DNA from: Takakia lepidozioides
Lineage: Eukaryota > Plantae > Bryophyta
Direction of reading: 5' to 3'
Assembly (NCBI GenBank): GCA_030704615.1
Contig: CM060734.1
Location: 744,001 to 808,000 of the forward strand
DNA length: 64,000 nt
Shown: positions 8,512 to 64,000 of the stretch, one piece after another
Numbering within the stretch: the stretch's first letter is position 1
Layout of the letters: each line of letters starts with the position of its first letter
Position numbers and translations under genes: made by a program
Notes under the pieces: generated by a model
Databases searched by the model: none
What the model saw: only the letters and a program-made list of their open reading frames with translations
What the model was told of the DNA's origin: nothing

Positions 8512-10784
8512 CACTGGAATGTCTGGTTGCAACACAGGAATAGCGTGTTGTTCTACTTCGATTATTTTGTTTCCAACTCAAAATTGACATAGATTTATCA
8601 TCAATCAGATTGTCTATAGGTTTGAGTGGCCTTGAAATGGAGCATGAAATACATGGGCATATGTACCATAATCTCCAACACAATGCACATTAGTTGATCT
8701 TACCAAGAAAATAATTTCCAAAGACAATATCTGCATTGTCTATGATTGTGGTTGCCAAAAAATGGAAAAGTCAACTTTAAAACTACAGGGATGTTTTTGT
8801 TGCATCATGTAGCAAAATGACTTGAAATAAGCATCTGAAAATGATATGTTATCAACCCGCTCAGTTAGCTGAGTTCGTTAGTAAGTAGGAAGAATCTCTC
8901 GGGGGCCGTGGGAACCTTCTAACCCTTCTAGTACCAACCCCTCAAGTGGTGGGACCCACTATCAGGCCTACTCCCACCACTTGACACCTGTATCCTCACT
9001 ACCCAAATTGGCCTGAGCCGTCCCCTATTTAATAGGTATCACCTTCTTGCCTTCTTTTTTTGGACCCCTTCATTTCTTGAAATCCCTCTGCCACCTAGAC
9101 CACTCTAGAAGGAACAGGGACCACCCAAACTTGGGGGCCTTATTCTCTCCAACTCTCAAAGCTTATGAAACTGTTATGTAATATATTTCCTTCCTTCCTG
9201 ATGCAACTTTCCCAGCCCCAAACCCGTACCTGTCACCCCACATGTGGAGAGAGTAGCATGGTCAAACTCAATATCCCTTCTTTTTACAATTCTTCAATCT
9301 AATTCTTCAATCAGCTGTTAACTCTTTCCGTAGTTTTCACCCACTTCCTCCCTTCCTCTCCTTGCACACAGTGCACATGGGAAAAAGGGAAAGAATTGAA
9401 AAGTTTCAGAGCTGTGTCTGTGTAAAGACGATTAAATTTTTGCAAATCATCCAAAGGTCAATCTCCCATCTTCAAAATCCTGAAGTTCTGAACACCTGCC
9501 AAGGCAAAATGCAGAAGCTGCACCGATTGTAACAAGCAAAGAAAAAAACAACAAGCAAGGGAAAAAGGGCAGGTAAATGAAACTAGATTACCAGGAGGAG
9601 AAAGAAAGGGACAGCTGAAGAAAGTAGGGAAGATAGTGTCCGGAGGAAAGATAACAACTATCACCTCGCAGAGCTCATGAAGGTAGAACTACCGCTTGAG
9701 GTAGTGTCAGAATGTAGATGAGCTTTAATCTTGGTATTCCTGATCCTTGAGCACATCTGGAAACGACAGATTATCCTCTTGATGATTGATGGTGTCAGGC
9801 ACAAGCATCTCAGTATATAGCCAGCAACGACGCACACAAGGCTCGCAAAGTGCGGAAATGATTGTCAGTACAGTCCAACATGGGCGCCACACTGCTCTGA
9901 ACCGGGGAGGCGGGTGCTTCAAGAGGAAAAAACTAACAGAGTGCCGTCGACTGGCCCCTTGATGGGGCTGTGCATAAGGAGTTCAACTTTGAAGCTACCA
10001 TCCAGGGATCTGTCATATCATGGAAAGCGAAGTCTCTGTAGCTTCCATGCACACAAATCCCTACCACATTTGTCTCTGCGACAATGGAAGCACAGAGCGA
10101 GGGTCAGACTGCGATGCGTAGCAAGAGTTCCCATTTCTTCCTTGCAGAAGTGCACCTGTTTGAACAGCTAACAGTTCTCGTCTGATAATAAGATAATCAT
10201 CTGTCCAACCAAAGGGCTTAGATTAACCGTGCAATGATAAACCCAGGACCTTGTCTATCATGCAAGAGAGGAGGGTGGCACACAAAGCAGACTTGATTTC
10301 TAGAAATGCAAAACCGGCCTCCATGTGCAGCCTAAATGTTGAGGTAGACACCTTCATCCTCCTCATCTTCACCATGTCGCAAGGCTGCAAATGCTCCCTA
10401 AGCAACTGAAGGTACAGGTCATGGCTCATACCGGCGGGTGCAAAAACCTGCAGTAATGGCACCTGTGTAATTGTCACAACACTGTGGTTCATCTCAGCAT
10501 TTGGTGACAGAGTTTGAGGAAATCCTGAATAGATAGATGGCAGGACAAATATAAATTACACTCAGGATATGATTTACCTTACTAACATAACCGTTTTCCT
10601 GACAAATAAGAGCACAAGGGATATATTAAAGTACCTACAATAACGAACTCATATGCATGAAATGAAAGCTTCTGGCACAGTTTTGGCAGATCTATCTGCA
10701 AATTTTTCCAGTGGATGTTGGGCATTTCACTGCTGCTGTTCAAATTGTACTGGGATTGCCATCACTGCCATAGGCAGCACTCAA

Positions 10785-12356
10785 GGAGCTACGTCCTGCC
10801 TCCTTTTTGACACACCTGTCCTGCATCAATTTTCGCACCTTTGCTTAGTCATCCCATCTACCAGCAGCAGCAGCATAGATATTGGACAGCAGAACATAAT
10901 TTCCAGCATCATGTGGATCCACCTTAAGAAGGCAATTCGCTGCACGTTCTGCTACCTCCACACAATTCTGCAAGGTTCCCCACACTGAAGCACCTGGCTT
11001 GCTTGGCATTTTTCTAATGAAGTCCTCTCCCTCATCCAATTGGCCTACGCGGCTCAGAAGGTCCAGCATGCAACCAAAATGCTCCACTCTAGGAGTGAGG
11101 CCATGATCTTGACTCATGAATCGAAGTGGTGACAACCCTCATCCACCAGGCCCAATGTTTACAGGCAGACAGAAGACATACATAGGTGATACAGTTTGGC
11201 TTCAAGCCTTCCAGTCGCATTTGTTCAAATAGTTGGAGCACTCCTTACCACACCCATTCTGACCATATCCCGCAGTCATAGCATTCCATGAGACTACATC
11301 TCAATGGGACATACTGTCAAACACTTAAGTGCATCCTTCATACTCCCACATTTGGCATACATGTCAACCAGGGTATTCTCCAAATTAATATACGATGGAA
11401 TTCCAGCTCTGCTGATGTCATCATGAACTTCTTTGCCTTTTACCAGGGCTCCTTCGATGGAACATGCATTGACAATGCAAATAAATGTCACCTTGTTGGG
11501 CATTACCCCTTCCCGTATCATTTGCTCATACATCCCCAAAGCAAGCCTACCACATCTCTGCTGAGCATATCCTGCAATCATTGTGCTCCAGGAGACCACA
11601 TTTCGCTTAGCCATATTGTCAAACACTTCCCGTGCATCGTTTACACTCCCTCGTTTGGCATACATATCGACAAGGGCATTCTCCAAATTTATGAATGATG
11701 CAATTCCAGTTTTAATGATGTCAGCATGGACTTCTTTCTTCCAGGGCTCCTAGGCTGGCACACAACATTAACACAGTGAATGTGGCCTTGTCAGGCGCTA
11801 CCCCTTCCTGTGCCATTTGCTTATACATCATCTTGAAAGCCTCCCTACTACACCCATGCCGAGCATATCCTGCAATCATTGTGTTCTATGAGACCACATC
11901 ACATTGTACCATGTTGTCAAACACTTTGTGGCCATCCTTGATGCTCCCACATTGATATACATGTTAACAGAGTATTCTCCAAATTGATATAAGAGGGAAC
12001 TCCAGCTCTGATGATGTCAGCATGGACTTCCTTGCCGATTTCCAGAGCTTTTAGGTTGACACAAGCCTTGAGAATGCAAATAACTGTGATGGTGTTTGGC
12101 GTCAAGCCTTCCTGTACCATTTGGCAGTAGATCTCAAAAGCTTGCTTACCATACCATGTTGAGTATATCCTGCCATCATTGTAGTCCATGTGAACACATC
12201 TCAGCAGGTGATTTTGTCAAACAATTGGCGTGCATCCACAAGGCTCCCGCACTTGGCATACATGTTCAGTAGGATGTTGAGTAGAGAGATGTTTGGCTTG
12301 AATCCAGTTTGGAGAATGTGGACGTGCACGTGCTTTCCCATTTGAAGGTCTTCATT
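10785..12356 (-). pseudogene. PLS-class PPR gene with E domain, frameshifted and degenerate
   Basis: Repeated NALVDMYAK.G...DAR.VFD...VVSWSTMIAGYAQ units. E-domain motifs EHFGCMLDLLSRVG and YVLLSNIYAAAAGRWDD. Many frameshifts. Confidence 0.9.
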
Positions 12357-13013: not shown

Positions 13014-13750
13014 CTACCCCATCAATGCACTTCCCAGTGAAGACCGGTCCATGAATGTGGGAATGGAAAAGAGAAGCAGTAGTTTGTGCATGGAAAATAC
13101 CTCATTTGGATCCAATGCCCTCATTCGATTGAGAGGCAAGTGGTAGATTGCACCAGTACAGAACACAGTAGTTGATTTTTTGCATTTTGCGGCATGGTTA
13201 TAATGGTGACTTGTTTTGTAGCAAGTAACCGTCCAGCCCTCAGTTTTGGAATCATATATCTCTGTACTATGTATGGGTTCATCACATTCTATACCCCCTG
13301 CCACAAGTATTGTATAGCCTCTTATGACCAGATCCATGTACATGAAAACCACAGGATTTTCTCTTCTATGATGTAGAAGATGCAGTTTCTTCTTGATCAG
13401 ACACAAAAATCCCACAAAAGGTGATTTCAGAGTGCAGTTGTTGTAAAGCAGAAGCACACAGGCTGCCGGGCAGAGCCTCCAGCCAGCTCTGGGTTGTTCT
13501 ATGTAGAAATGAAGAATGGAAGTAAGGGACATGGAGTAGTACCACTCATCCGGCCCATGGTTGTATGCGTGGGCCTCGCCAGACCCACGATTGTCGTACA
13601 AGAATAACCAGGATTTTGGAGGGGGAACTTCGGTTCTGGGGCATTGTTGACTTGGGAACCAGTCAAAGTATATATCTATGTCCCATTCCTTCCTGGCCTC
13701 AGTGGCTGCTGCTTGGCTGGAGCTATATCGTGAAACTCCTACCTCGCCTC
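13014..13750 (-). pseudogene. F-box/kelch-type protein remnant
   Basis: WLFLYD...AHAYN...DEWY and ILVAGG...STEIYDSKTEGW (kelch-like). No intact F-box N-terminus; frame is degraded. Confidence 0.6.
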
Positions 13751-52027: not shown

Positions 52028-52579
52028 TATGCCTTGTATTTGTTTTCTTTTGCCTGTAGCTTAGAAAGATTGCACCCCTGCACTCTCGTGTCATGAGTGG
52101 CATTTGGGTTCATGTTGTCTTGTAAGCTGGTAGACAGCACCTGATAACTGGGTGGGTGCAGGGTTCATCAACTTGAATCACGCCTAATAGCATTCCACAC
52201 TCAATCCGGCAGTGAGTCTGGACTGCTTTTCTCCACTTCTATGTTGCCTCCATACAGAAGAGGAGAATAACAGTGCAGACACAATCGGAGATGAGACAAT
52301 CTTCCTCTCAAATGCGGAGCGCGAATCCCAGATGCGGAGCTCAAACTGTTTAGGGAACGACGAGCCCTTTGCCTTAGCATATTTCATGTTTGGTAATGAT
52401 CTGTTCAAGGACGATAGTGTTTCGAGGGGTGCATGTAAAGCTTGCGACATGTAAGCCAGATAGCATGAGATGTCGGCAGCTGCCTCGCAATAGGCTTTGA
52501 GGGAGACATGTGGTTCAGCAATTAAGCATGGGTGGATGGGCAACTGCAGGAAGCAGCAGCAGCAGCAGAGTTGTCAAAA

Positions 52580-52740
52580 TCCGGCACTTTCTTCTTCAAC
52601 ACATGTCATCCACTTGTTGTCATGGTGTGGTGGAGTGCAATGATTGCAGGATATGCCCAGCATGGTTGTCACAGGAAGGCCCTGCATCTCTTTGAAAGAA
52701 TTAACAAAAAGGCTTGAAGCCAGACAATATCACCTTTTAA
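52580..52740 (+). pseudogene. Single PPR motif fragment
   Basis: WSAMIAGYAQHGCHRKALHLFE. Confidence 0.75.
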
Positions 52741-53449
52741 ATGTGAACATCAAGGTGTTACTCCGGCAGCGGCTGCATGTTGGACCTTCTTGGACGCGTG
52801 GGCCGGCAATTTGCCAAGGCATAGGACCTCTTTCAATAGTTATTTTGTGTGCAGATCTCGTAGCGTTAAGATGCAGGCACCTAAGAGTCTTGCAACGACT
52901 TATATTAGAATTCAGCTTGTGTGGTGTGATCAAAAACTTGAAAATTCAAAATGTATATTCTACACCAGTACAATTTGGCATTCTTAGGCCATTTCATAAT
53001 CAATGTGCCCCATTGTGTTGCCTGGGATTGGAGCTATTGAGTAACATAACTGTGCCGCTCTATTGCACTTGGTAAACCCATTGTTTGAGGTAGTTGTTTT
53101 GTGTGCAGATCTGGCAAGACACGCAAGTTTTCATGGCAAAATCAGCAGAAAATAATGTGGGGGTAGAATGCAACACCACGGACATTGTTCAAAAAACTCT
53201 ATGTACACTTTCTGGAGTGTTCATCCAAGTCATTCCCGACATAGGTTGAACATGTTGACCATTACTTTCAATAAAACCACATTCTACATTTTTTTCGCTT
53301 GCAATACCTTAAGTAGGGCAGCAGGAAGTGATTGGTGGTGGTGGATCCACACATGGAAAATGTGTCTGTAGTACTAAAATATATATTCTCAGGGCCTTCC
53401 TCCCGAGCCGCTCAATGTCGAAAGCCACTCGATGGCTGATACAGACATC

Positions 53450-56400
53450 ATAATCCCATGGGGGAATTGGAGTAAGGGGTGTTGTTGAGCAGGTGACTTT
53501 TGTTCCATGAGAATTAGGATAGTGGCAGAGGAGGGGGAGGAACGGGCAACAAGGCGAGCCCATTGGAGGGCTTCATGTGTGAGGTGTCCAGGTGGCGGGT
53601 GGGCAAGGCCATGACCTGACCATGTGTGTTGAGTCGCGGTGCCTTTAGCCCCGGAGACACATTCTCTAGGGTATGGGCTGTCATAGGAAGAGAGTTCAAG
53701 AGGACATGTGAGTGGACTTGAGTAGTAGGTGTGAGTGACTTGAAATGAAGTGATAAGAAATTTGAGGATATTCGATATCTGGCGACTAGCCAGCATACTT
53801 CAGTGGCGAAGTCTTGCCTAGGGGGTTGAAGCTGGTTAGTGTAGATGGCGGAGGCAGTATATCGCTCCCAGAGCCATGCCATCCTTGTGTGAGAGATTGT
53901 TCCTACAAATTGTCCATGGAGTGTGTATATGTTAGTTACGGAATGGCTTGGGCAGAGGACAAGGTGGATTTGGTCAATGTCTTTGTCAGGGTTACATTCG
54001 GAGATTGTTATCTGTATTTTTGGGGCAGCAAGTGGGGTGTGGATGTATCTGTCATCCCTTGATTGGGTTTGGGATACATGTTGTTGGTGGAGGTGGGTTA
54101 GGTATTTAGTGTTAGTCGAATTGTGGAAATTAGTCAGGAGGGTGAGGTTGTGAACGGGGTCGCAATCTTCATGGTTGCCAAAGAGGTCATCTTCTATTTG
54201 CCATGTGTTATCTTCAATGGGATAGTCGGCCCATTTGGGTAAGTGCAGACTACACTGGCGCAAAAACGGCAGACGTGCCCTCCACTTAAAGTCCATGAGA
54301 AAAACTTTGCTACCATTTTAATTAAGGATATTTGTTCAAGTATATGTTTATCTTCATAGGCAATGGTATACTAATCATATTTAGTAAATGGTCTCATCCC
54401 AAATATTTGAGATATTTTTTATTATATATTTTAAAAATATTTTCCCTTATTTAGAAATAATAGCTATTTATTATTATCTTGTAGTTTATGAAAATTTTCC
54501 ATATAACAATAAGTTCCTAGAGACAACAACAATATATATATTCTTAGCAAAGATCTCCACCCAAATATGAAATTTTCAAAATGCTATGGATAAACCGTCA
54601 TTTTGGGGGTTTTTTTGGTAAAAAAAAATCCATAGTGTCTTGATGGATGGATGGAATTGTTCACAAATTTATATTTGTGTCTATTCAAACATTGTGTATG
54701 TAGTGTAAAGTCCATATATGAATTGGTTTTGCACAAATAGGTTTTTCAAATGGCATTTGGGACAATAGATGGACTATGACAGTCCATTGGAATTCCATGC
54801 AAAAGTCCATAGCTTCATGAGATTTCATCCAAATTCCAAAATAATTATACCCACATGTACATATGGTAAGCAGCTAACCCATTCTAAGTCCATTTGCTAT
54901 GAATATATACTTATGTGTATAGGGTGAAGAATAATATGATAGGCAATCAATCGAAAACTGCAAATTGCAGTCCAAACTAAAGCCACTCTAGTCTGCATCT
55001 ACCCATTTACAGAGATCGTATGTATCGACACATGTGGCGCCAAAGGCGTCCAGTGAAGTTTGGGTTTTGATGCCATGGATAGCCTCAATAACGAAGGCTT
55101 CTGGGTGTTCTGGGTTTGTTGGATAGGAGTTAAGTGTCGGGGCGGTATGATTTGGGAAGCTAGGGGGGGTAGATTGGGATTGAGTAGGTGTGGGGAGTGG
55201 AGGGGAGGTGGTGGGGGTGTGTCATGTGTGGGATGTTCATGCATGTTATGGGAGTTTTTTAGCTGCTGGAGTATTGAGGTGGCTGGAGCTGTTCTGAATT
55301 CGGGGAGGAGGTCTTGCTGGTTGTGTGGGAAGAGTAAACAATGGAATCACAATCCAGGGTACATGAGACCGTTGGGTGGCAAAATAGAGAGCAGAGGTGT
55401 GATAGATATCTACATGTTTTGATGGTGGCTCGAGAATGTCTTTGGGTGAATTGTGTGGGTGTTAAGAGCCGTGTCCCTGTGGCAGTGGTAAGTTGGGTAA
55501 GGCTAGAGATACTACGTTGTTTGAAGTATGCCAAAATGAGTTTTTTCTGTGGTGGGTGGGAGTGTTCAAATTGTGTGTGGGAGGGGCTTTGAAGCCATGC
55601 ACGTTCAAGTGGGGAGATGGTGTTGGGGTAGCTTGGTAGGTCGGTTTGTATACTGATCTTCAGTTGTCTTAGGATAAACAGTGTGCGGGCGGTTGGGGAG
55701 TGAAGGCATGATTGGGGATAGAGGGTGGGAAGGGAATAAAGCCCATTGTATTTACCCGCTAGGTGTTTGAGGAGGCCTCTGAAAATGAGTCCTAAGCGAC
55801 CGGGGTCGTTTAGGGCTTTTGTAATTGTGAACCAAGGGTGCGGGCGTATGAGATGATGAGGGGACTAGAGCCTATGCCATAGCTATCATGTGGGAGTTGG
55901 GTAAGAGCGTTCGGGGTGCTAGTGGGTAGGCCACATATACATTTGGTGAGTTGAACAACATTTTTATCAATTTCTTTGATGTCTGGTAAAGAGAAGGGGG
56001 CGGCATGAAAGGCGTATTGTACTTGGGTTTTGAGGACTGTGTTGATGATGGCAAGCTTGGGGCGGATCTCGAACCCCTATTTCATGACCTCCTCTTTAAT
56101 TTTTTCCAACTCTGCTACCAGCTCCACCGTATACCACACTCTTGGAAGCATAGCAGGACCATATTACTATTAAAAAAAGGTGACCCCATGGACCTTGGTA
56201 ACTACAAACCTATCGCACTAGCTAATACTATATACAAACTATTCACTAGCACCCTGACAACAATGTTGTCTACCTATGGGGAACAACACCGGATCCTCAG
56301 CGACCCACAAGAAGGTTTTTGTGCTACGCGGAGTATCACCAGACAGATACAATATGTCATGTCAGCTCTGGAAGATGCAAAACTGACCGAACAGGACATT

Positions 56401-58571
56401 TATCTTCTCTACATCGACTTCAAAAATGCCTTCTGATCCCTAGACCACCCCCGCCTGCTCGCTGTCATGACAGATTTAGGATACCCTACAGATGCTATCC
56501 AACTCATTGGTAACATCTACACCAACAGCACCACAGAATACGCTGGTTCTTACTATGGTTCCACGCCTCCTATTCCCATCCTTCATGGAACCATTCAAGG
56601 TGACACTCTGAGCCCTTATCTCTTCATCATATTCCTTGAACCCCTGCTCAGATGGCTCGCCAGTAGAAACCTACAAAACCTCCCCTAATGAAATCACTGC
56701 AGCAGCTTATGCTGACGACCTTGCCATACTTGTACACAACCTCAACATCTTAACCGACAGGTGGACAAACTTGTCCGCTTCAACCAATGGTCTGGCATGG
56801 AGCTCAGCCTCCACAAATGTGCGGTCACTGCTGTCATACATTGCAGCAAACTCACAAAATCCACCATAGCCTCCCACTGCAAACTCCACATACATTACCA
56901 ACAAAAACCCTTCCCTTTCTTAGGCCCAGACGAACCCTACACCTATCTTGGCATGCTTGACTTTGCATAAACAAGTGGATGCGTGTTGGCTTGGATGCAG
57001 GCAGTTAGAGACTGTGGGTGTGTATGAAGTCGATGCGTGCGACCATATTTCATCCCGAATGTCACCAGGTTTGGTTAATAGGTGGCCTAGTCTGTGTTTG
57101 AGACAGTCGATGGGGGGGTTAATTGCAGGATTGAAGATAGCTTTGTGGGCTCGTTTAGGGTGTTCATGTAATAGTTTGCCAAAGGAGGCAACACTTTTTT
57201 TGTGATTGGCTGTGGCCTTTTCTTTTGTGATAAGGTATGTCGGTTTTTTTGCATTACGACCGATTTTGGATAGGGAGGCAAGCCATTGGGGAAGGGAGGG
57301 GGTGTCCATGGGTGGAGGTAGGAGCGGTTGGCATATTTCTAATGTATTTAAACAGGTTATGCGCTCCAGTTGTTATATGTCGGGGGTGGGGAGCGGGGTA
57401 TGACGGCAAGGGCCCGTCGGATGGTGTGGTAGATATTGAGGTGGGAGGACCATGCCCGTTTCTGGGTCCTAGTGAGATATCCGCCGTTTTGCTTTGAGCG
57501 GGCGGTTTGTGGGAGGTCTAGAGGAGCTGAGCATATGGCTAAGACACTTTTGGTCATGTCTAGCATTGTAGATGAGAGGATAATCTCAGCCTCGGTCCAT
57601 GCGGCCTCGGGAGATAAGAGTGTATTAGTGTCTGAGAGGGTAGAGGAGATTTTATGTATGAAGATAGAGGAGGCGGTGTGGAAGTGTTCTTGGAAGGCCT
57701 TGAGATTGTTAAGTAGGATGGGTGATAGAATTCTGGGTTGAGGGGGTGGGGTGTGTACATCCGGGAGGGGTCGGAAGGGGATAAGAGATGGGGGAATAGA
57801 GATAGAGATCGGGTAGTGATCGGAATTGCATAGACTATTGATATGGACATGGTTGTGAAGATATGTGGGGATTTCATTACTAGATCTGAGGTAAAAGCCA
57901 TCAAGCAAGCTTATGGAGGAGTAGTGGAGACCCCCTTGTCGGGAGTAGTGATAATCGGTGGGGATATATTTGAGCTTTAAAGACTGAGTGAATTTGGCCC
58001 AGTCGTGATCTGGGTCCGAAGGTGATTTGTGAACACCATTATATGAGTGACCTAACAGTGCAATGTCCCTGTTAAAGTCCCCTGCTAGGATGACGTGATG
58101 GTGCTGGTGGTCTGGGTGGGTGACTGTCTGGGAAATACTATGTAGTATTTCCGGTATGAGGGGAGGTCATTTGTATGAGAGGGCATATATAAATGTATAA
58201 GGGTAATGGGGCATAGTGCTGGTGGGTGTAGTTGGATAATTTGTAGGTGTGAGCGGATAGGGATAGGGACGGTGATTTTGGTAGTGGTGCTAGGAGAATG
58301 GTGTGTGCGGAGGATGCCCAGTGCAACGCCGCCCCTAATGGGCTTATAGGGTGCGGAGCGGCGTAGGAGACATTGTTGAGTAGTTAGAGGGTTACCGTAA
58401 AATAGATGATAGTTGGGAAGTAGTTTGTTTAAGTAAGAACTGCTAGTGTTATTGGTGTGGAGTTTGGTTTCCTGCAGGAGGAAGACATGTGGTTGTGCTG
58501 TGTTAGAGAAGAGGTGAAGCAGGCTTTGGATACTAGTGGCTAAGGCGCCCACGTTCCATAATGTGATGGTG
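53450..58571 (-). mobile_element. Non-LTR retrotransposon (APE-RT with long C-terminal extension: chromodomain and PCIF1-like domain); RT core inverted, nested TIR element, 5' end interrupted by a gypsy element
   Basis: APE: TLWNVGAL, LLQETKLH, GDFN (~58075), LDGFY, SDHYPI. RT on the + strand 56068-56955 (NYKPIALANTIYKLF, YIDFKNAF, GTIQGDTLSPYLF, YADD, YTYLG). Post-RT domain resumes on the - strand from ~56065. Confidence 0.9.
54237..55004. mobile_element. Non-autonomous TIR element (768 bp) with 4-bp TSD, Sola-like
   Basis: TIRs GGGTAAGTGCAGACTACACTGG / CCACTCTAGTCTGCATCTACCC. TSD ATTT at 54233-54236 and 55005-55008. Excision restores the LINE reading frame. Superfamily call is tentative. 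Confidence 0.85.
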
Positions 58572-59297
58572 TGTCGCGGCCCTTTGCCTTGAGGGCAGGG
58601 GGTCGGGACACATGAGGGGCTGCCCCTGTGGTGGGGGCAGTGGCAGCGATAGGTACGGGGGGCTGAAGCACCCTTGAGTGCCCAAGGCACTCAAGGAGGC
58701 GGAGGTGCTCACTAGGTGGAGCCCCGCACACCGGGATGCGGTGGGGGTGGCTTCACAAAGGGGTGGTGGTAGCTTAGCGGGACTTAGTGGGGGTGGCATA
58801 GGACTCACCTTGGGGCGGAGACCTCGTGGTGGGAGTCGTGGGGAGTCTTGGGACTCATCACGGTCCATAGGGGCCGTGGTGGATGGGCCAAGTCTCACCG
58901 CGACTCATCACCGGGAGTCGAGGGTTTTCGTGGTGGTTCGCCATAAAATGGCATGGTTGTTTGTGAAACCCCCGCGGACAGCTACAGAAGTATATATAGG
59001 GAGTAGTAACCCCGAGAACGGTGCAAGCCCGTTGGTGACCAAAAACTAGTGAGTAAGCGAGCGAGCCGGAAAGCGACCAAAGAGTGGGGAGCTGTTCCGG
59101 ACTGCCAACTACCAAGGGAATTCCCGCTGGGCCCAAATCGGTGGAGGGTTCTTTGGGAGATCAAAGGGGGACCGTTATGCCCCGGTGAGTAGCCGAAGCT
59201 CCAAGTTGGCCCGGCGGCCAGGTTGGGAGTTAGGCGCGCGCATCAAAGCGAGTAACTATGACTTGAAGGGGAGCTTACCGAAGTGAGGTGCGCGACA
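58572..59297 (+). repeat. 5' LTR (726 bp)
   Basis: TGTCGCG...CGCGACA termini; matches the sequence from 63595. Confidence 0.95.
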
Positions 59298-59299
59298 CT

Positions 59300-59311
59300 T
59301 GGTATCAGAGC
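59300..59311 (+). promoter_or_regulatory. Primer-binding site, tRNA-iMet
   Basis: TGGTATCAGAGC, 2 nt after the LTR. Confidence 0.93.
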
Positions 59312-62300
59312 TTAGAGTTCAGTACGTGATCGTCCTTGGGATTGGCCTCATCATGGGGTCGGGCAAGCCAAAACGAAAGCGGAACGGCCCAAAAGATGAT
59401 GATCCTGGTGAGCCCGATGGGGGCGACGTGTCACCGAGGCGGCCGTTTGAGGAAGCGATGCATGATTCCGAAAACAAGGCCGCTCAAGAGCGGGAGGAAT
59501 CCGAGGAGTCGGAGCCCGAGGAATCCCTGAGAGCTCCGACCGACCAACAGATGCCTCCCATGCCGGCAGCCTTTTGGGAAGGGTTGTTGGCGCAGTTTGG
59601 CAGGACGCTGAAAGACGTGTTGAAGGCGGCTAATGCCACTTCCACTGAGGCAAAGTTTAAGGTGAAGCCTAAGGAACCCGGCACCTTCAAGGGCGTCCGA
59701 AATCGGAAGGCACTCAACACCTGGCTCCTGGAGCTAGAGCAGTACTTCCGGGTGGCCAAGTTGAGTGACGAGGATCGGGTGGAAGTGGCTCCCACCTATT
59801 TGAGGGGCTATGCTCAACAATGGTGGCAGAAACGCCTTCACGACCAAGGTCCAAGCCCGGAAACCTTGAACTGGAGTGGGTTCAAGGAATTGATGAAAAG
59901 ACAGTTTGTGCCCCTCAACGCGTCCTGGCTTGCCCGGGACAAGATGAGGAATTTGAAGCAAACAGATGACATTCGGGGATATGTCCAGGCTTTCAATGTG
60001 CTTTTGCTCGAAGTCGCGGACATGGCAGAACCAGAAATGGTCTTCAACTTTGTGGCGGGATTGGCCCCATGGGCCAGGCGGAAGTTGGAGGAGAAGCCAC
60101 CTAAGACTTTGAACGAGGCAATTGAGAGGGCTGAATGTTTCTCGGATGTCTCTAGGGGTGAAAGACAAGGCCATACGGAGCTGAACCACAAGAAGACCCG
60201 GCGGGAAGGTGACCCCTTCCGAACGGAAAAGAAGTGGGATAGACCACGCGGCGACAATGACACGTGGAAATCGAAGGGAGGGCCTTTACACGTCAAGGCG
60301 GTACCCGGTGCTTCGAAAGGAAAAGCGGGTGGAGCGGCTTATGGCGGACAGAAGACCACCTTTGATGGAGTGTGTTTCAATTGCGGGGAGCCCGGGCACA
60401 TGGCCAAGAAGTGCACAAAACCTTGACAATTGAACATGACTCGGGCAACCACGGAGCTGTCAGAAGATACCATCAGTCGCTTGGTGGAAGCGGTGGTCGC
60501 CAGGACTTGCAAGGTAGGCAACTATTCTTGTGAGTTGTATCAGGAAACTAGCGCCCTACGTAAAGGGAGTCAGTTATTGTTTGTGGATGGGATAATATCC
60601 GAAACTAATGTGTCGTTGTTGGTGGACACATGAGCGCCGCACTCCTTCATGACGCCGACGGCGGCGCAAAAGTTGGGACTTCCGACAAGTGACGTGGGGG
60701 CCTCTATTGAGGTGCATTCTGCCAAAGGAGAACCACAACTGGCGACAAGGTTGGCATTTGATGTTCCTCTTCAACTGGGGAGTTGGGAGGGACGTGAGAA
60801 TTTCACCATCTGCGAGATCGATGGAGTGGATCTCATTTTGGGGATGACCTTTTTGAGCAAATCCGGAGCGGTCATAGATGGTCGCAAGAGAGTAGTCACA
60901 CTGCCATGTGGGAATGGTGGTGAGGTCTTACGAGTGTCAGAAACGCCCAAACCCGTGGGAGGGCGAATAAGCCTTCTGTCAGCAAGGGAGTGGGCCGTGG
61001 AGGAGGCACATGAGCCCCAGTTTTTGCTCTACATTAGAGAAGTGAAGGGGGAAGGCGATGGGGAGCCGAGCCCAGATTGGATCAAGGGGATTTTGGAGAA
61101 ATACCAGGATGTGATGCCGGAGGATTTACCAAGCGGTTTGCCACCGCGAAGAGGAGTTGACCACAAGATTGAGGTGATACCGGGATCGGAACCGCCTGCC
61201 AAGGCGCCCTACCAGTTGAGCCACAGAGAGTTGGTCGAGCTGAAGACTCAGCTCAAAGATATAATGTCAAAGGGGTACATCCGGCCGAGTAAGTCACCTT
61301 ACGGAGCCCCGGTGCTATTTGCAGATAAAAAAGATGGGACGCTGCGGATGTGTGTCGATTACAGGGCTCTGAATAAGGTGACTATCAAAAACCGATACCC
61401 TTTGCCAAGGATCGACGACCTCTTCAATCGGTTGGTAGGAGCGAAGTATTTCAGCCGGATCGACTTGCGCTTCGGCTATCATCAAATTCGGGTGGCGGAA
61501 GGAGATGAGGAGAAGACCGCGTGCATGACAAGGTATGGTTCATATGAATTCTTGGTGATGCCTTTTGGGCTCACCAATGCACCAGCGACATTTAGCACGC
61601 TGATGAACAGCCTTTTTCAGGAGTGGTTGGATGGCTTTGTGATCGTGTACATCGACGACATCTTGGTGTACTCGAAAACGGAGGAGCACCTGGAGCCCCT
61701 GAAAAGGGTGTTCCAAAAATTGCGGGAAGGGAAGCTATACGCCAAAGCTTCAAAGTGCGAATTCGGGGTCACGAAAGTGGAGTTCTTGGGGCATGTGATT
61801 ACACAGGATGGGATCAAAATGGATGACAGAAAGGTGAGGGCGATCTTGGACTGGGAGCCTCCGACTTCGGTCCCGGGAGTGCGATCCTTCTTAGGACTCG
61901 CCTCCTATTACCGGAAGTATGTGAGAAATTTCGCCAAGATCGCGGGGCCGCTGTCGGACCTTCTGTGTAAATCCAAAGTCTGGGTATGAAACACCTTTTG
62001 TGGCCAAGCTTTTGCTGAATTGAAGCAGCGGATGGCGGAAGCTCCAGTCTTGAAAATCCCGGAGTTCGATCGTCCGTTCGAGATTCATACGGATGCGTCG
62101 GACTTCGCGATTGGGGGTGTACTTATGCAAGATGGACGTCCAGTGGCTTACGAAAGTAAGAAACTAAATGAAGTGGAGCGACAGTGGCCGACGCACGAAA
62201 AAGAGATGAAGGCGGTGGTGCATTGCCTTGAGCTTTGGCGCCACTATGTTGGTACCAACCCAATGAAGGTGTTCACGGACAATGTTACGGTGAAGTATTT

Positions 62301-63594
62301 TGCCACGCAGCCCAAGTTATCCCCAAAACAACTTAGGTGGCAAGATACTTTGGCAGTGTTTGACGTGGATATCGTACAAACCGGGACGTGACAATGTGGT
62401 GGCCGATGCTTTAAGTAGAAAGCAGCAGCTCATGTTGGTGTACAGGGGCGAGACGGCGCTCCAAAGGAAGATCCGGAAGGCTTGCCGGAAGGATGAGCTG
62501 GCGAAGTCCGTGATGCAGGACTTGAGGAGGGGGGTTAAATCGCAGTTCCACTTGCAAAATGGACTGCTCCGGTATAAGCAAAAGCATCTCTACGTGCCGA
62601 AGGGAGGGATCAGAGATAGTCTCTTGAGAGAATGCCATGATAGCCCGCTTGCGGGCCACGGCGGAGCCAAGCGCACTGCGGCACTCTTGAAGAAAGAGTA
62701 TTTCTGGCCCAAACTGAGGGAGGAGGCAGAGGAGTATGTCAAGACATGCATTACATGCCAACAAAATCGGAGCGAGTACAAAAATCAAGTGGGGCTATTA
62801 CAACCCTTGCCGATTCCAGAGGGGACTTGGGAAAACGTCTCGATGGATTTCATGACTGCTATGCCGCTGTCAAAAGGATTCGATTCAATCATGGTGGTGG
62901 TGGATAGGTTCAGTAAAATGGGCCATTTCATCCCCATCAAGGAGACGGCAACGGCACAGGAAACATGACGACTTTACTTCGCTCACGTCTTAAAGCATCA
63001 TGGAGTCCCGAAGGATATTGTCTCGGACCGCGATCCAAAGTTTACGAGTAAATTTTGGAGGGCACTTTGGAAGAAGATGGGGACGAGGCTGAAGATGAGC
63101 ACCGCCTTCCGACCTACGACCGACGGCCAAACGGAAAGAATGAATTCCGTAGTGAAGCAGATCTTGCGGAATTACGTGTCGGCAGACCAAACAGACTGGG
63201 TGGAACACTTAGACACGACAGAGTTCTGTTATAAGGGGGTTCGAGATGAACCCTTGCGCAAGGTGATGCCAAAAGCGGCATCATGAGCGATCGCAAGCAA
63301 TGTTGTTGCAGTAAGGCGATTCGATCCTCGGGGAGGATCGTTCCTTGGCCTTGAAGTAGGCCAATAAGAGTGCACTGGGAGGAGCTTGAGAGGCTCCATC
63401 CCTGGCCGAGACTTGGAGGAAGTCGGCCGAACTAGCTAGTGGAGAGTAGAGTCAAGTGTGGGGTTTGGTTCTTTGCCATGGGACGCCATGGTACGGAAAC
63501 AAACTCCTTGATGTGGGACGCCACAACTTGGATGTTCGTTTCTACAAAATGGACAAGTCGATGAGGACATCGACTCCCTGTTGGTAGGGGTGTG

Positions 63595-64000
63595 TGTCGC
63601 GGCCCTTTGCCTTGAGGGCAGGGGGTCGGGACACATGAGGGGCTGCCCCTGTGGTGGGGGCAGTGGCAGCAATAGATACGGGGGGCTGAAGCACCTTTGA
63701 GTGCCCAAGGCACTCAAGGAGGCGGAGGTGCTTACTAGGTGGAGCCCCGCACACCGGGATGCGGTGGGGGTGGCTTCACAAAGGGGTGGTGGCTTCATAA
63801 AGGGGTGGTGGTAGCTTAGCGGGACTTAGTGGGGGTGACATAGGACTCACCTTGGGGCGGAGACCTCGTGGTGGGAGTCGTGGGGAGTCTTGGGACTCAT
63901 CACGGTCCATAGGGGCCGTGGTGGATGGGCCAAGACTCACCGCGACTCATCACCGGGAGTCGAGGGTTTTCGTGGTGGTTCGCCATAAATGGCATGGTTG
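63595..64000 (+). repeat. 3' LTR (runs off the window), preceded by a short purine tract
   Basis: Near-identical to the 5' LTR from 58572, with an extra ~20-bp duplication at ~63790-63810. GGTAGGGG at 63583-63590. Confidence 0.95.

Follow-up and report, generated by a model that had tools for sequence, protein, structure and literature searches.

A dead LINE copy in Takakia lepidozioides belongs to a retrotransposon family with a chromo-type domain and a PCIF1/CAPAM-like fold

A dismembered LINE in the window

We analysed a stretch of 64,000 nucleotides from the bryophyte Takakia lepidozioides (assembly GCA_030704615.1, contig CM060734.1, positions 744,001 to 808,000 of the forward strand), hereafter the window. 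Positions 53450-58571 of its minus strand hold the remnant of one retrotransposon without long terminal repeats (non-LTR), a long interspersed nuclear element (LINE), with its pieces in the order apurinic-like endonuclease (APE), reverse transcriptase (RT), post-RT region, chromodomain and PCIF1-like fold. The original prediction had joined these scattered fragments into a single polyprotein, and this reading is confirmed by colinear tblastn matches to relatives (among them L001, L007 and L014) and by fusions of the domains within single open reading frames (ORFs) of such relatives. The LINE pieces are listed below from the 5' side of the element, followed by the two elements inserted among them, one of which has terminal inverted repeats (TIRs).

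57780-58570, minus strand: APE remnant, with a frameshift near 58100-58165 and its 5' side cut by a gypsy LTR
56956-57779, minus strand: pre-RT region between APE and RT, colinear by tblastn with L001 7444-8571 and L014 7980-8315
56065-56955, plus strand: RT core, inverted, with RVT_1 matches, an in-frame stop at 56434-56436 and frameshifts
55132-56058, minus strand: post-RT region (IRPKLAIINTVL..., ALNDPGRLG...) and linker to the chromodomain, matching the post-RT regions of L001, L007 and L014 (tblastn, E 7e-33 to 1e-22)
55005-55131, minus strand: N-terminal half of the chromodomain (...AFVIEAIHGIK...TYDLCKW), aligned to the first half of the relatives' domain and mapping to L014 10345-10455
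54031-54236, minus strand: C-terminal half of the chromodomain (KWADYPIEDNTWQIEDDLF), a helix (HNLTLL...) and a short unaligned linker to the PCIF1-like fold, recognised by Pfam Chromo and the relatives' alignment
53450-54030, minus strand: PCIF1/CAPAM-like methyltransferase fold, from ECNPDKDI to ...TILIL..., matching L001, L007 and L014 (tblastn, E 2e-38 to 4e-24)
54237-55004, unstranded: nested non-autonomous TIR element, no part of the LINE, which splits the chromodomain
58570-64000, plus strand: Ty3/gypsy LTR retrotransposon inserted in the LINE and no part of it, recognised by its LTR pair, with a 3' LTR that extends off the window

Stop-free segments of positions 53400-58700 were scanned piece by piece with Pfam. 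Recognisable LINE pieces lie in minus-strand segments, the plus strand contributing only a block at about 56000-56970. Exo_endo_phos matches the minus-strand piece 58088-58690 (E 0.0065) and Exo_endo_phos_2 the minus-strand piece 57360-58166 (E 5.7e-4), and three plus-strand pieces within 55990-56967 match RVT_1 (E 4e-7, 1.6e-5 and 0.0098). At the 3' side of the element, the minus-strand piece 53517-54317 matches the Chromo profile over positions 22-44, its C-terminal half only (E 0.052; 13.9 bits against a gathering score of 25.1), and the minus-strand piece 53392-53799 matches PCIF1_WW (E 0.17; 11.9 bits). These matches are weak taken alone and mutually consistent.

The order of the pieces is carried by comparison with the relatives. 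Whether the relatives' frames are compared with the window or the window pieces with L014, the tblastn matches are strictly colinear, far above chance. In the window they span 58558-57780 for APE, 57315-56956 for the pre-RT region, 56065-56955 on the opposite strand for RT, 56067-55370 for the post-RT region, 55131-55005 for the N-terminal half of the chromodomain, and 54275-53503 for its C-terminal half together with the PCIF1-like fold; at best, RT reaches E 3e-52 and the chromo/PCIF1 part E 2e-38. The APE piece matches the APE segment of L001 (E 1e-24) and maps to L014 6735-7895, the RT core is 49-76% identical to the relatives' RT, and the PCIF1-like piece is 42-45% identical to the relatives' cores. 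The two chromodomain halves fall on adjacent, slightly overlapping positions of L014 and form one uninterrupted domain in the relatives' alignment. The post-RT motifs of the window copy recur in the protein P0111, where they share one ORF with RT. Nucleotide identity to L001 and L007 is about 63-68% and limited to RT (blastn), and no close DNA relatives were obtained. The identities and order of the pieces are established, and so is the place of the chromo and PCIF1-like module as an integral and conserved component of this family.

The window copy itself is dead, having suffered a gypsy insertion, an RT-core inversion that cost it sequence at both junctions, a TIR insertion in the chromodomain, several frameshifts and stops, and the loss of its 3' part beyond about 53450. 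The inversion had been proposed from the fragments themselves and is borne out by the strand of the tblastn and RVT_1 matches. Indeed, GC skew is strongly positive on both flanks and negative exactly over 56000-57000, the sign flip expected of an inverted segment. Comparison with the relatives (tblastn) places deletions of about 162 and 105 nucleotides of element sequence at the two junctions. The junctions are tight and the inversion is internal, with both flanks in direct orientation, so that it is not a simple product of twin priming.

The boundaries given originally for the nested TIR element are exact. It measures 768 bp at 32% GC, with 24-bp imperfect TIRs (20 of 24 positions matching; GGGTAAGTGCAGACTACACTGG...) and a target-site duplication, ATTT, at 54233-36 and 55005-08. 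Taking out the element and one copy of the duplication restores, by reading, the junction of ...YDLCKW with ADYPIEDNTW...; no further copy of the element was found in the 64-kb window. The gypsy element begins with its 5' LTR at about 58570 and interrupts APE at the first conserved residues. Its LTRs (58569-58947 and 63592-63989) are 98% identical, which points to a fairly young insertion nested in an old LINE, and the long plus-strand ORFs between them, which include 59299-60426 and 60649-61989, resemble gag-pol on inspection by eye.

At the other end, the PCIF1-like fold of the window copy carries a frameshift near 53775-53790 and an AHPPP at 53590-53604 as the equivalent of methyltransferase motif IV. 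Homology to the relatives stops at about 53450-53500, corresponding to residue 363 of the 464-residue L007 frame, and about 60 residues at the end of the fold are lost. Searches with the relatives (tblastn) found no RNase H, CCHC finger or restriction-like endonuclease (RLE) in the 64-kb window, which together with the stop in homology indicates that the copy is 3'-truncated inside the PCIF1-like fold. Directly past this truncated end lies a reading frame that resembles pentatricopeptide repeat (PPR) proteins (...WSAMIAGYAQHGCHRKALHLFERI...; 52500-52720, plus strand). A second copy of the LINE is absent from the window; a weak second RT match at 1372-1626 on the plus strand (34% identity to L007 RT, E 1e-5) probably belongs to another retroelement.

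Relatives and the architecture of fuller members

Relatives were collected by a full-library phmmer search with a 267-residue chromo/linker piece as query, and the set was extended by further homology searches. The 69 proteins retrieved by phmmer, with a best E of 2.6e-27, are without exception short ORFs from metagenomes. In Pfam they match PCIF1_WW, in several cases above the gathering score, and in addition P0001 matches Chromo and P0029 RNase_H. On contigs from two different multi-copy families, an RVT_1 ORF lies directly upstream of the PCIF1_WW ORF on the same strand; the same contigs carry APE farther upstream, and RNase H and a PD-(D/E)xK-like segment downstream. RVT_1 and PCIF1_WW occur in the single ORF of P0111 (749 residues), and PCIF1_WW and RNase_H in those of P0105 (734 residues), P0126 (1112 residues) and others. 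PCIF1_WW scores 47.8 bits in P0105 and 39.4 bits in P0126 (gathering score 31.1), and RNase_H 48-52 bits in P0105, P0109, P0125, P0126 and L014 (gathering score 25.8). The APE segment of L001 also passes its Pfam threshold (Exo_endo_phos, 25.9 against 24.5 bits).

The fullest picture comes from L014, where an element of about 11.4 kb is preserved nearly intact, its two long frames separated by one stop and one frameshift. The first, of 1067 residues, holds the N-terminus, APE (by tblastn only, with no Pfam match at E<=0.01) and the first part of RT. The second is a stop-free frame of 1220 residues that contains the C-terminal part of RT, the post-RT region, the chromo-like domain, PCIF1_WW, RNase H, a CxxC...H...C finger and an RPDIL...IEFT motif; its Pfam matches are PCIF1_WW and RNase_H only. 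L001 and L007 likewise carry APE, RT, PCIF1_WW, RNase H, the CxxC...H...C finger and a KPDIL...IEFT motif, and they end in (TTC)n-type simple repeats (at about 13150-13170 and 9240-9270, respectively). The RNase H and RLE that were to be looked for in fuller copies thus turned up as an RNase_H Pfam match followed by a CCHC finger and an RLE-like motif.

Independent contigs of at least five divergent families show this domain order, and single ORFs contain parts of it. Between families, identity is 64-79% in RT, 42-64% in APE, 47-60% in RNase H, 41-59% in the PCIF1-like domain and 26-45% in the chromo-type domain. The original prediction had also allowed for copies without the downstream modules, or for an unrelated gene or element at 53450-55100; the shared order speaks against both.

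A gene for a DYW-type PPR protein (...CSCGDYW) lies at L013 3-1058 (plus strand), next to a member of the family on a metagenome contig from ENA, which indicates that these metagenome contigs are land-plant DNA. We further note an NCBI protein, P0121, named 'MAG TPA: RNase H family protein, partial [Candidatus Nitrosocosmicus sp.]', which carries PF12237 and PF00075 and shares 61% identity with P0105 from the PCIF1-like fold to RNase H. Its most likely source is DNA of a plant LINE that was wrongly binned with an archaeal metagenome-assembled genome (MAG).

The chromo-type and PCIF1-like domains

In the window copy the C-terminal half of the chromodomain has ten sequence matches in the PDB, all of them chromodomains, the best being Entamoeba histolytica HP1 (E 0.0019) and later ones Chp1, CHD6, CBX1, HP1 and CDYL; the N-terminal half alone has no PDB sequence match. 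The closest relative, P0001, passes the Pfam Chromo threshold (36.6 against 25.1 bits). By alignment, the aromatic-cage positions of the window copy are Phe (in AFVIEAI), Trp (in CKW) and Tyr (in ADY), and P0001 has Trp and Tyr. The methyl-lysine reader that had been proposed is therefore plausible for the lineage of the window copy. It does not carry over readily to the family as a whole, of which one in 82 members reaches Pfam Chromo (PF00385) and most have an invariant Trp and the first aromatic with the third cage position usually lost (Leu, Ser or similar).

A model of the chromo-like region of P0105 (residues 147-247; predicted local distance difference test score, pLDDT, 90.7) shows three strands followed by a long helix. 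Foldseek returned nothing significant for this model. An exhaustive VIA search of 48,161 chains gave chromoshadow and chromo domains as best matches (Z 5.0-5.7, whole targets covered), led by the chromoshadow domains of Chp2 (Z 5.7) and HP1alpha (Z 5.6). On this modelling the chromo fold is predicted to be family-wide and the reader-type sequence lineage-specific, the domain being canonical in the lineage of the window copy and degenerate (chromo/chromoshadow-like) in most others.

It is possible, if the less favoured reading of these data, that the domain serves across the family as a chromoshadow-like dimerisation module or a nucleic-acid-binding module, with reader residues confined to the sub-lineage of the window copy and P0001. 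The two top fold matches, the long helix after three strands, the near absence of Pfam Chromo matches and the altered third cage position in most members would all fit such a module. Set against this, the Z scores of chromo and chromoshadow domains are tied within one unit, the invariant Trp and first aromatic are retained in most members, and P0001 and the window copy show sequence matches to genuine chromodomains that bind H3K9me3.

The relationship of the second domain to PCIF1/CAPAM is supported by both sequence and predicted structure. A ten-sequence family profile (A1) matches zebrafish and human CAPAM in the PDB (E 3e-4 for 6irx, and 4e-3), and a larger, fragment-rich profile (A2) gives no PDB match by sequence. 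PF12237 matches 35 of the 82 family members (best 49.2 bits). An AlphaFold (AF2) model of P0105 residues 165-575, built from an 82-row alignment (pLDDT 75), was searched with Foldseek, where nothing but six CAPAM entries matched it significantly (E 4.5e-9 to 1e-7; next match at E about 1e-2), and VIA-align superposes 239 residues on human CAPAM 366-668 with Z 15.7, the runner-up being RlmJ at 7.5. The nearest shapes in the ESM Atlas are a chlorophyte PCIF1_WW cluster and vertebrate PCIF1; its feature search reached PCIF1_WW clusters at sub-threshold level only (0.76). Since the structural match begins at the ECNPD motif, the segment ECNPDKDI...ARY, originally taken for a linker separate from the PCIF1-like domain, belongs to the fold.

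The family also keeps blocks in common with PCIF1, F-x-SP-x-x-C and FP-x-D-x-x-FGS-x-G, and the best-matching stretches are SYFSSPxTCP and SPFPRDxIFGSxG in the family against FECFASPLNC and SAFPDiDGFFGSRG in PCIF1. What is not kept is the catalytic motif. The canonical motif of N6-adenine methyltransferases is [DN]PP[YFW], and an enzyme screen dropped PCIF1-like ORFs that lack it (bioRxiv 10.64898/2026.10.22.757692). In the HMMER alignment the family has G-x-G-(L/Y)-A-H-P-x-x opposite ...E-A-N-P-P-F of PCIF1. Of 73 distinct contexts in the family, 61 have His where PCIF1 has Asn, 5 have Tyr, 5 Phe, 1 Pro and 1 Thr; the residue is never Asp, Asn or Ser, and the canonical motif occurs in none. 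The tetrad is HPHN in 31 of the 73, and HPHT, HPNT, HPPP (in the window), FPTD and YPTY are among the others, mostly with no aromatic residue at the fourth position. As the motif is replaced in all 73 contexts, canonical catalysis is not expected, and the description of the element as adenine-methylating, with His, Tyr or Phe in 71 of the 73 where PCIF1 has the Asn of NPPF, is not supported.

We also considered a displaced catalytic motif, as NPPY or SPPY strings occur in P0148 (at 264), P0151 (240), P0140 (380) and P0158 (146). They lie about 120 residues downstream of motif IV, in a Pro-rich linker that joins the PCIF1-like fold to RNase H, reads I(N/S/T)PP(Y/F)I..PP.TP in some lineages (also in the L001 frame 10960-12132) and is a low-confidence loop of the model. 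The strings are not conserved, and the candidate was rejected.

Conservation at the level of APE and RNase H indicates that the element evidently needs its PCIF1-like domain, which matters to it across divergent families even without the canonical motif. The domain probably serves the element in a non-canonical way. On balance we lean towards a non-catalytic or non-canonical module of the ribonucleoprotein (RNP) that binds nucleic acid or S-adenosylmethionine, and we regard a canonical adenine N6-methyltransferase as improbable.

Equally unlikely, in our view, is the original picture of a reader-writer element that would combine a methyl-lysine-reading chromodomain with an active N6-adenine methyltransferase, whose substrate would be capped RNA of the element, its cDNA or the target DNA. 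The clear CAPAM-type fold, the conservation of precisely those stretches that match PCIF1 best, the overall conservation of the domain and the HPPY found at motif IV in a few members all speak for it. These are outweighed by the residues at the first and fourth motif-IV positions and by the reach of the similarity: only the equivalent of human residues 366-668 aligns, so that the part of human PCIF1 N-terminal of residue 366 has no counterpart in the structural alignment and no cap-binding helical domain is evident, and no WW domain is matched by Pfam in the 82 members.

That the 3' modules are an unrelated gene or element at 53450-55100 beside a truncated LINE can be dismissed, for although juxtapositions do occur in so heavily nested a region (gypsy and TIR insertions, inversion), the order shared among families and the colinearity of the window across the supposed boundary, including the linker 55132-55600, refute it unless the contigs are misassembled.

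A probable Dualen/RandI-type family and its known counterparts

For the Dualen group, said to be named 'RandI' in Repbase, the reference is reportedly that of Kojima and Fujiwara from 2005. The hallmark of the group is the presence of both APE and RLE, with RNase H and CCHC (PMC4640811, PMC5029228). Its members add accessory domains, as in the cryptophyte Dualen-1_GCr, which carries a SET methyltransferase and a C48 peptidase (PMC5029228), and algal RandI families end in microsatellites (PMC3747384). The relatives fit the Dualen-type relationship that had been suggested, with APE upstream of RT and, downstream and in frame with RNase H, the CxxC...H...C finger followed by (K/R)PDIL...IEFT as an RLE-like, PD..E-bearing C-terminus. 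RNase H, CCHC and a putative RLE in the relatives give the family an architecture of Dualen/RandI type. The RT of L007 is also closer to R2 (E 7.6e-27) than to L1 ORF2p (E 1.5e-11). In plant L1 and RTE elements, APE and RT are followed by a zinc knuckle or by an RNase H of archaeal type, the tail is poly(A) or a short repeat, and an RLE is lacking; the relatives differ in their RLE-like C-terminus, their (TTC)n ends and an RT nearer to R2 than to L1.

We therefore consider it likely that the window holds a dead copy of a land-plant Dualen/RandI-type LINE whose family carries a chromo and PCIF1-like module. An intact member would encode an ORF2 of about 2500 residues comprising APE, RT, the post-RT region, the chromo-type domain, a class I methyltransferase fold of PCIF1/CAPAM type, RNase H, CCHC and a PD-(D/E)xK nuclease, and would end in a simple-repeat tail. 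It would move by target-primed reverse transcription, with APE and RLE cutting DNA and RNase H removing the template. The chromo-type domain may tether the RNP to chromatin, and in the window lineage, where the aromatic cage is kept, possibly to methylated histone tails. Such tethering could bias insertion toward heterochromatin, as in chromoviruses.

Several points weigh against parts of this reading. The putative RLE is recognised only by its motifs and a weak Pfam match to L_protein_N (E 0.0014), and the RLE segment of L007 has no PDB sequence match. The window copy itself lacks RNase H, CCHC and RLE, and its probable Dualen membership is drawn from relatives with only 36-62% protein identity. 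Loss of the third cage residue in most members, with chromoshadow domains among the best folds, means that histone reading may not be family-wide. Finally, the strong conservation of His at the Asn position could mark an unusual catalytic residue and not lost catalysis.

We hold a bolder version to be quite unlikely: an abundant land-plant Dualen lineage with a histone-mark reader and an enzyme derived from PCIF1/CAPAM, with an unusual His-Pro motif, in its ORF2, still methylating adenine, whether at the cap-adjacent base of the element's RNA or as N6-methyladenine (6mA) on cDNA or target DNA. If adenine methylation were retained, this would be the first LINE with its own epigenetic or epitranscriptomic reader-writer pair. 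Under the reading that we prefer, of a Dualen/RandI-type LINE with a non-canonical PCIF1-like domain, the family is a natural instance of retrotransposition machinery with a repurposed (pseudo)methyltransferase, and it lets the guidance of LINE insertion by chromatin be tested in plants. Its ORFs are mis-annotated in metagenomes, as with the archaeal-MAG 'RNase H family protein', and can be confused with host PCIF1 genes. The value of the window copy lies in being one more witness of a Dualen lineage with this module.

Our literature search found no paper that describes a chromodomain in a non-LTR element and none that links a PCIF1/CAPAM-type fold to any transposable element. The combined architecture was not found in full texts for Dualen or any other non-LTR element, Repbase lying outside that search. 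A homology search with the RNase H-RLE region retrieved the same family only and no algal Dualen; the algal Dualen consensus sequences themselves were not compared.

Compared with known Dualen/RandI elements, the family shares APE upstream of RT, with RNase H, CCHC and a putative restriction-like endonuclease downstream in one giant ORF, as well as simple-repeat 3' tails, an RT closer to R2 than to L1, occurrence in the green lineage and a tendency to gain accessory domains. What sets it apart are the chromo-type domain and the PCIF1/CAPAM-type fold that separate its RT from its RNase H.

With PCIF1/CAPAM (PDB 6IRV-6IS0), a cap-specific mRNA (2'-O-methyladenosine-N6)-methyltransferase, it shares the fold over about 240 residues, PCIF1_WW matches above the gathering score in relatives, and the conserved blocks. 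The family domain departs from the enzyme in that NPPF has become (H/Y/F)-P-x-x, the WW domain is missing, sequence identity is 16-17%, and the domain is embedded in a retrotransposon polyprotein.

Chromodomain capture, as covered in PMC5348765, concerns LTR elements only, and in the part of that source that cites Gao et al. (2008) the chromovirus chromodomain is described as directing integration to heterochromatin. Like the chromodomain LTR retrotransposons (Ty3/gypsy chromoviruses, Chronos and CoDi-I), the family described here is a retroelement with a captured chromodomain, of reader-type appearance in the window lineage. Unlike the chromoviruses, it is non-LTR and without integrase, and its domain sits between RT and the methyltransferase fold, not at the integrase C-terminus. 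A further difference from the chromodomain LTR elements is that the cage is degenerate in most members.

DIRS-type retrotransposons carry a (phage) Dam-like adenine methyltransferase domain of unknown role. They thus share with this family a fold of N6-adenine-methyltransferase type within a retrotransposon polyprotein; theirs is Dam-like and not PCIF1-like, and the element that carries it is a tyrosine-recombinase retroelement, not a LINE.

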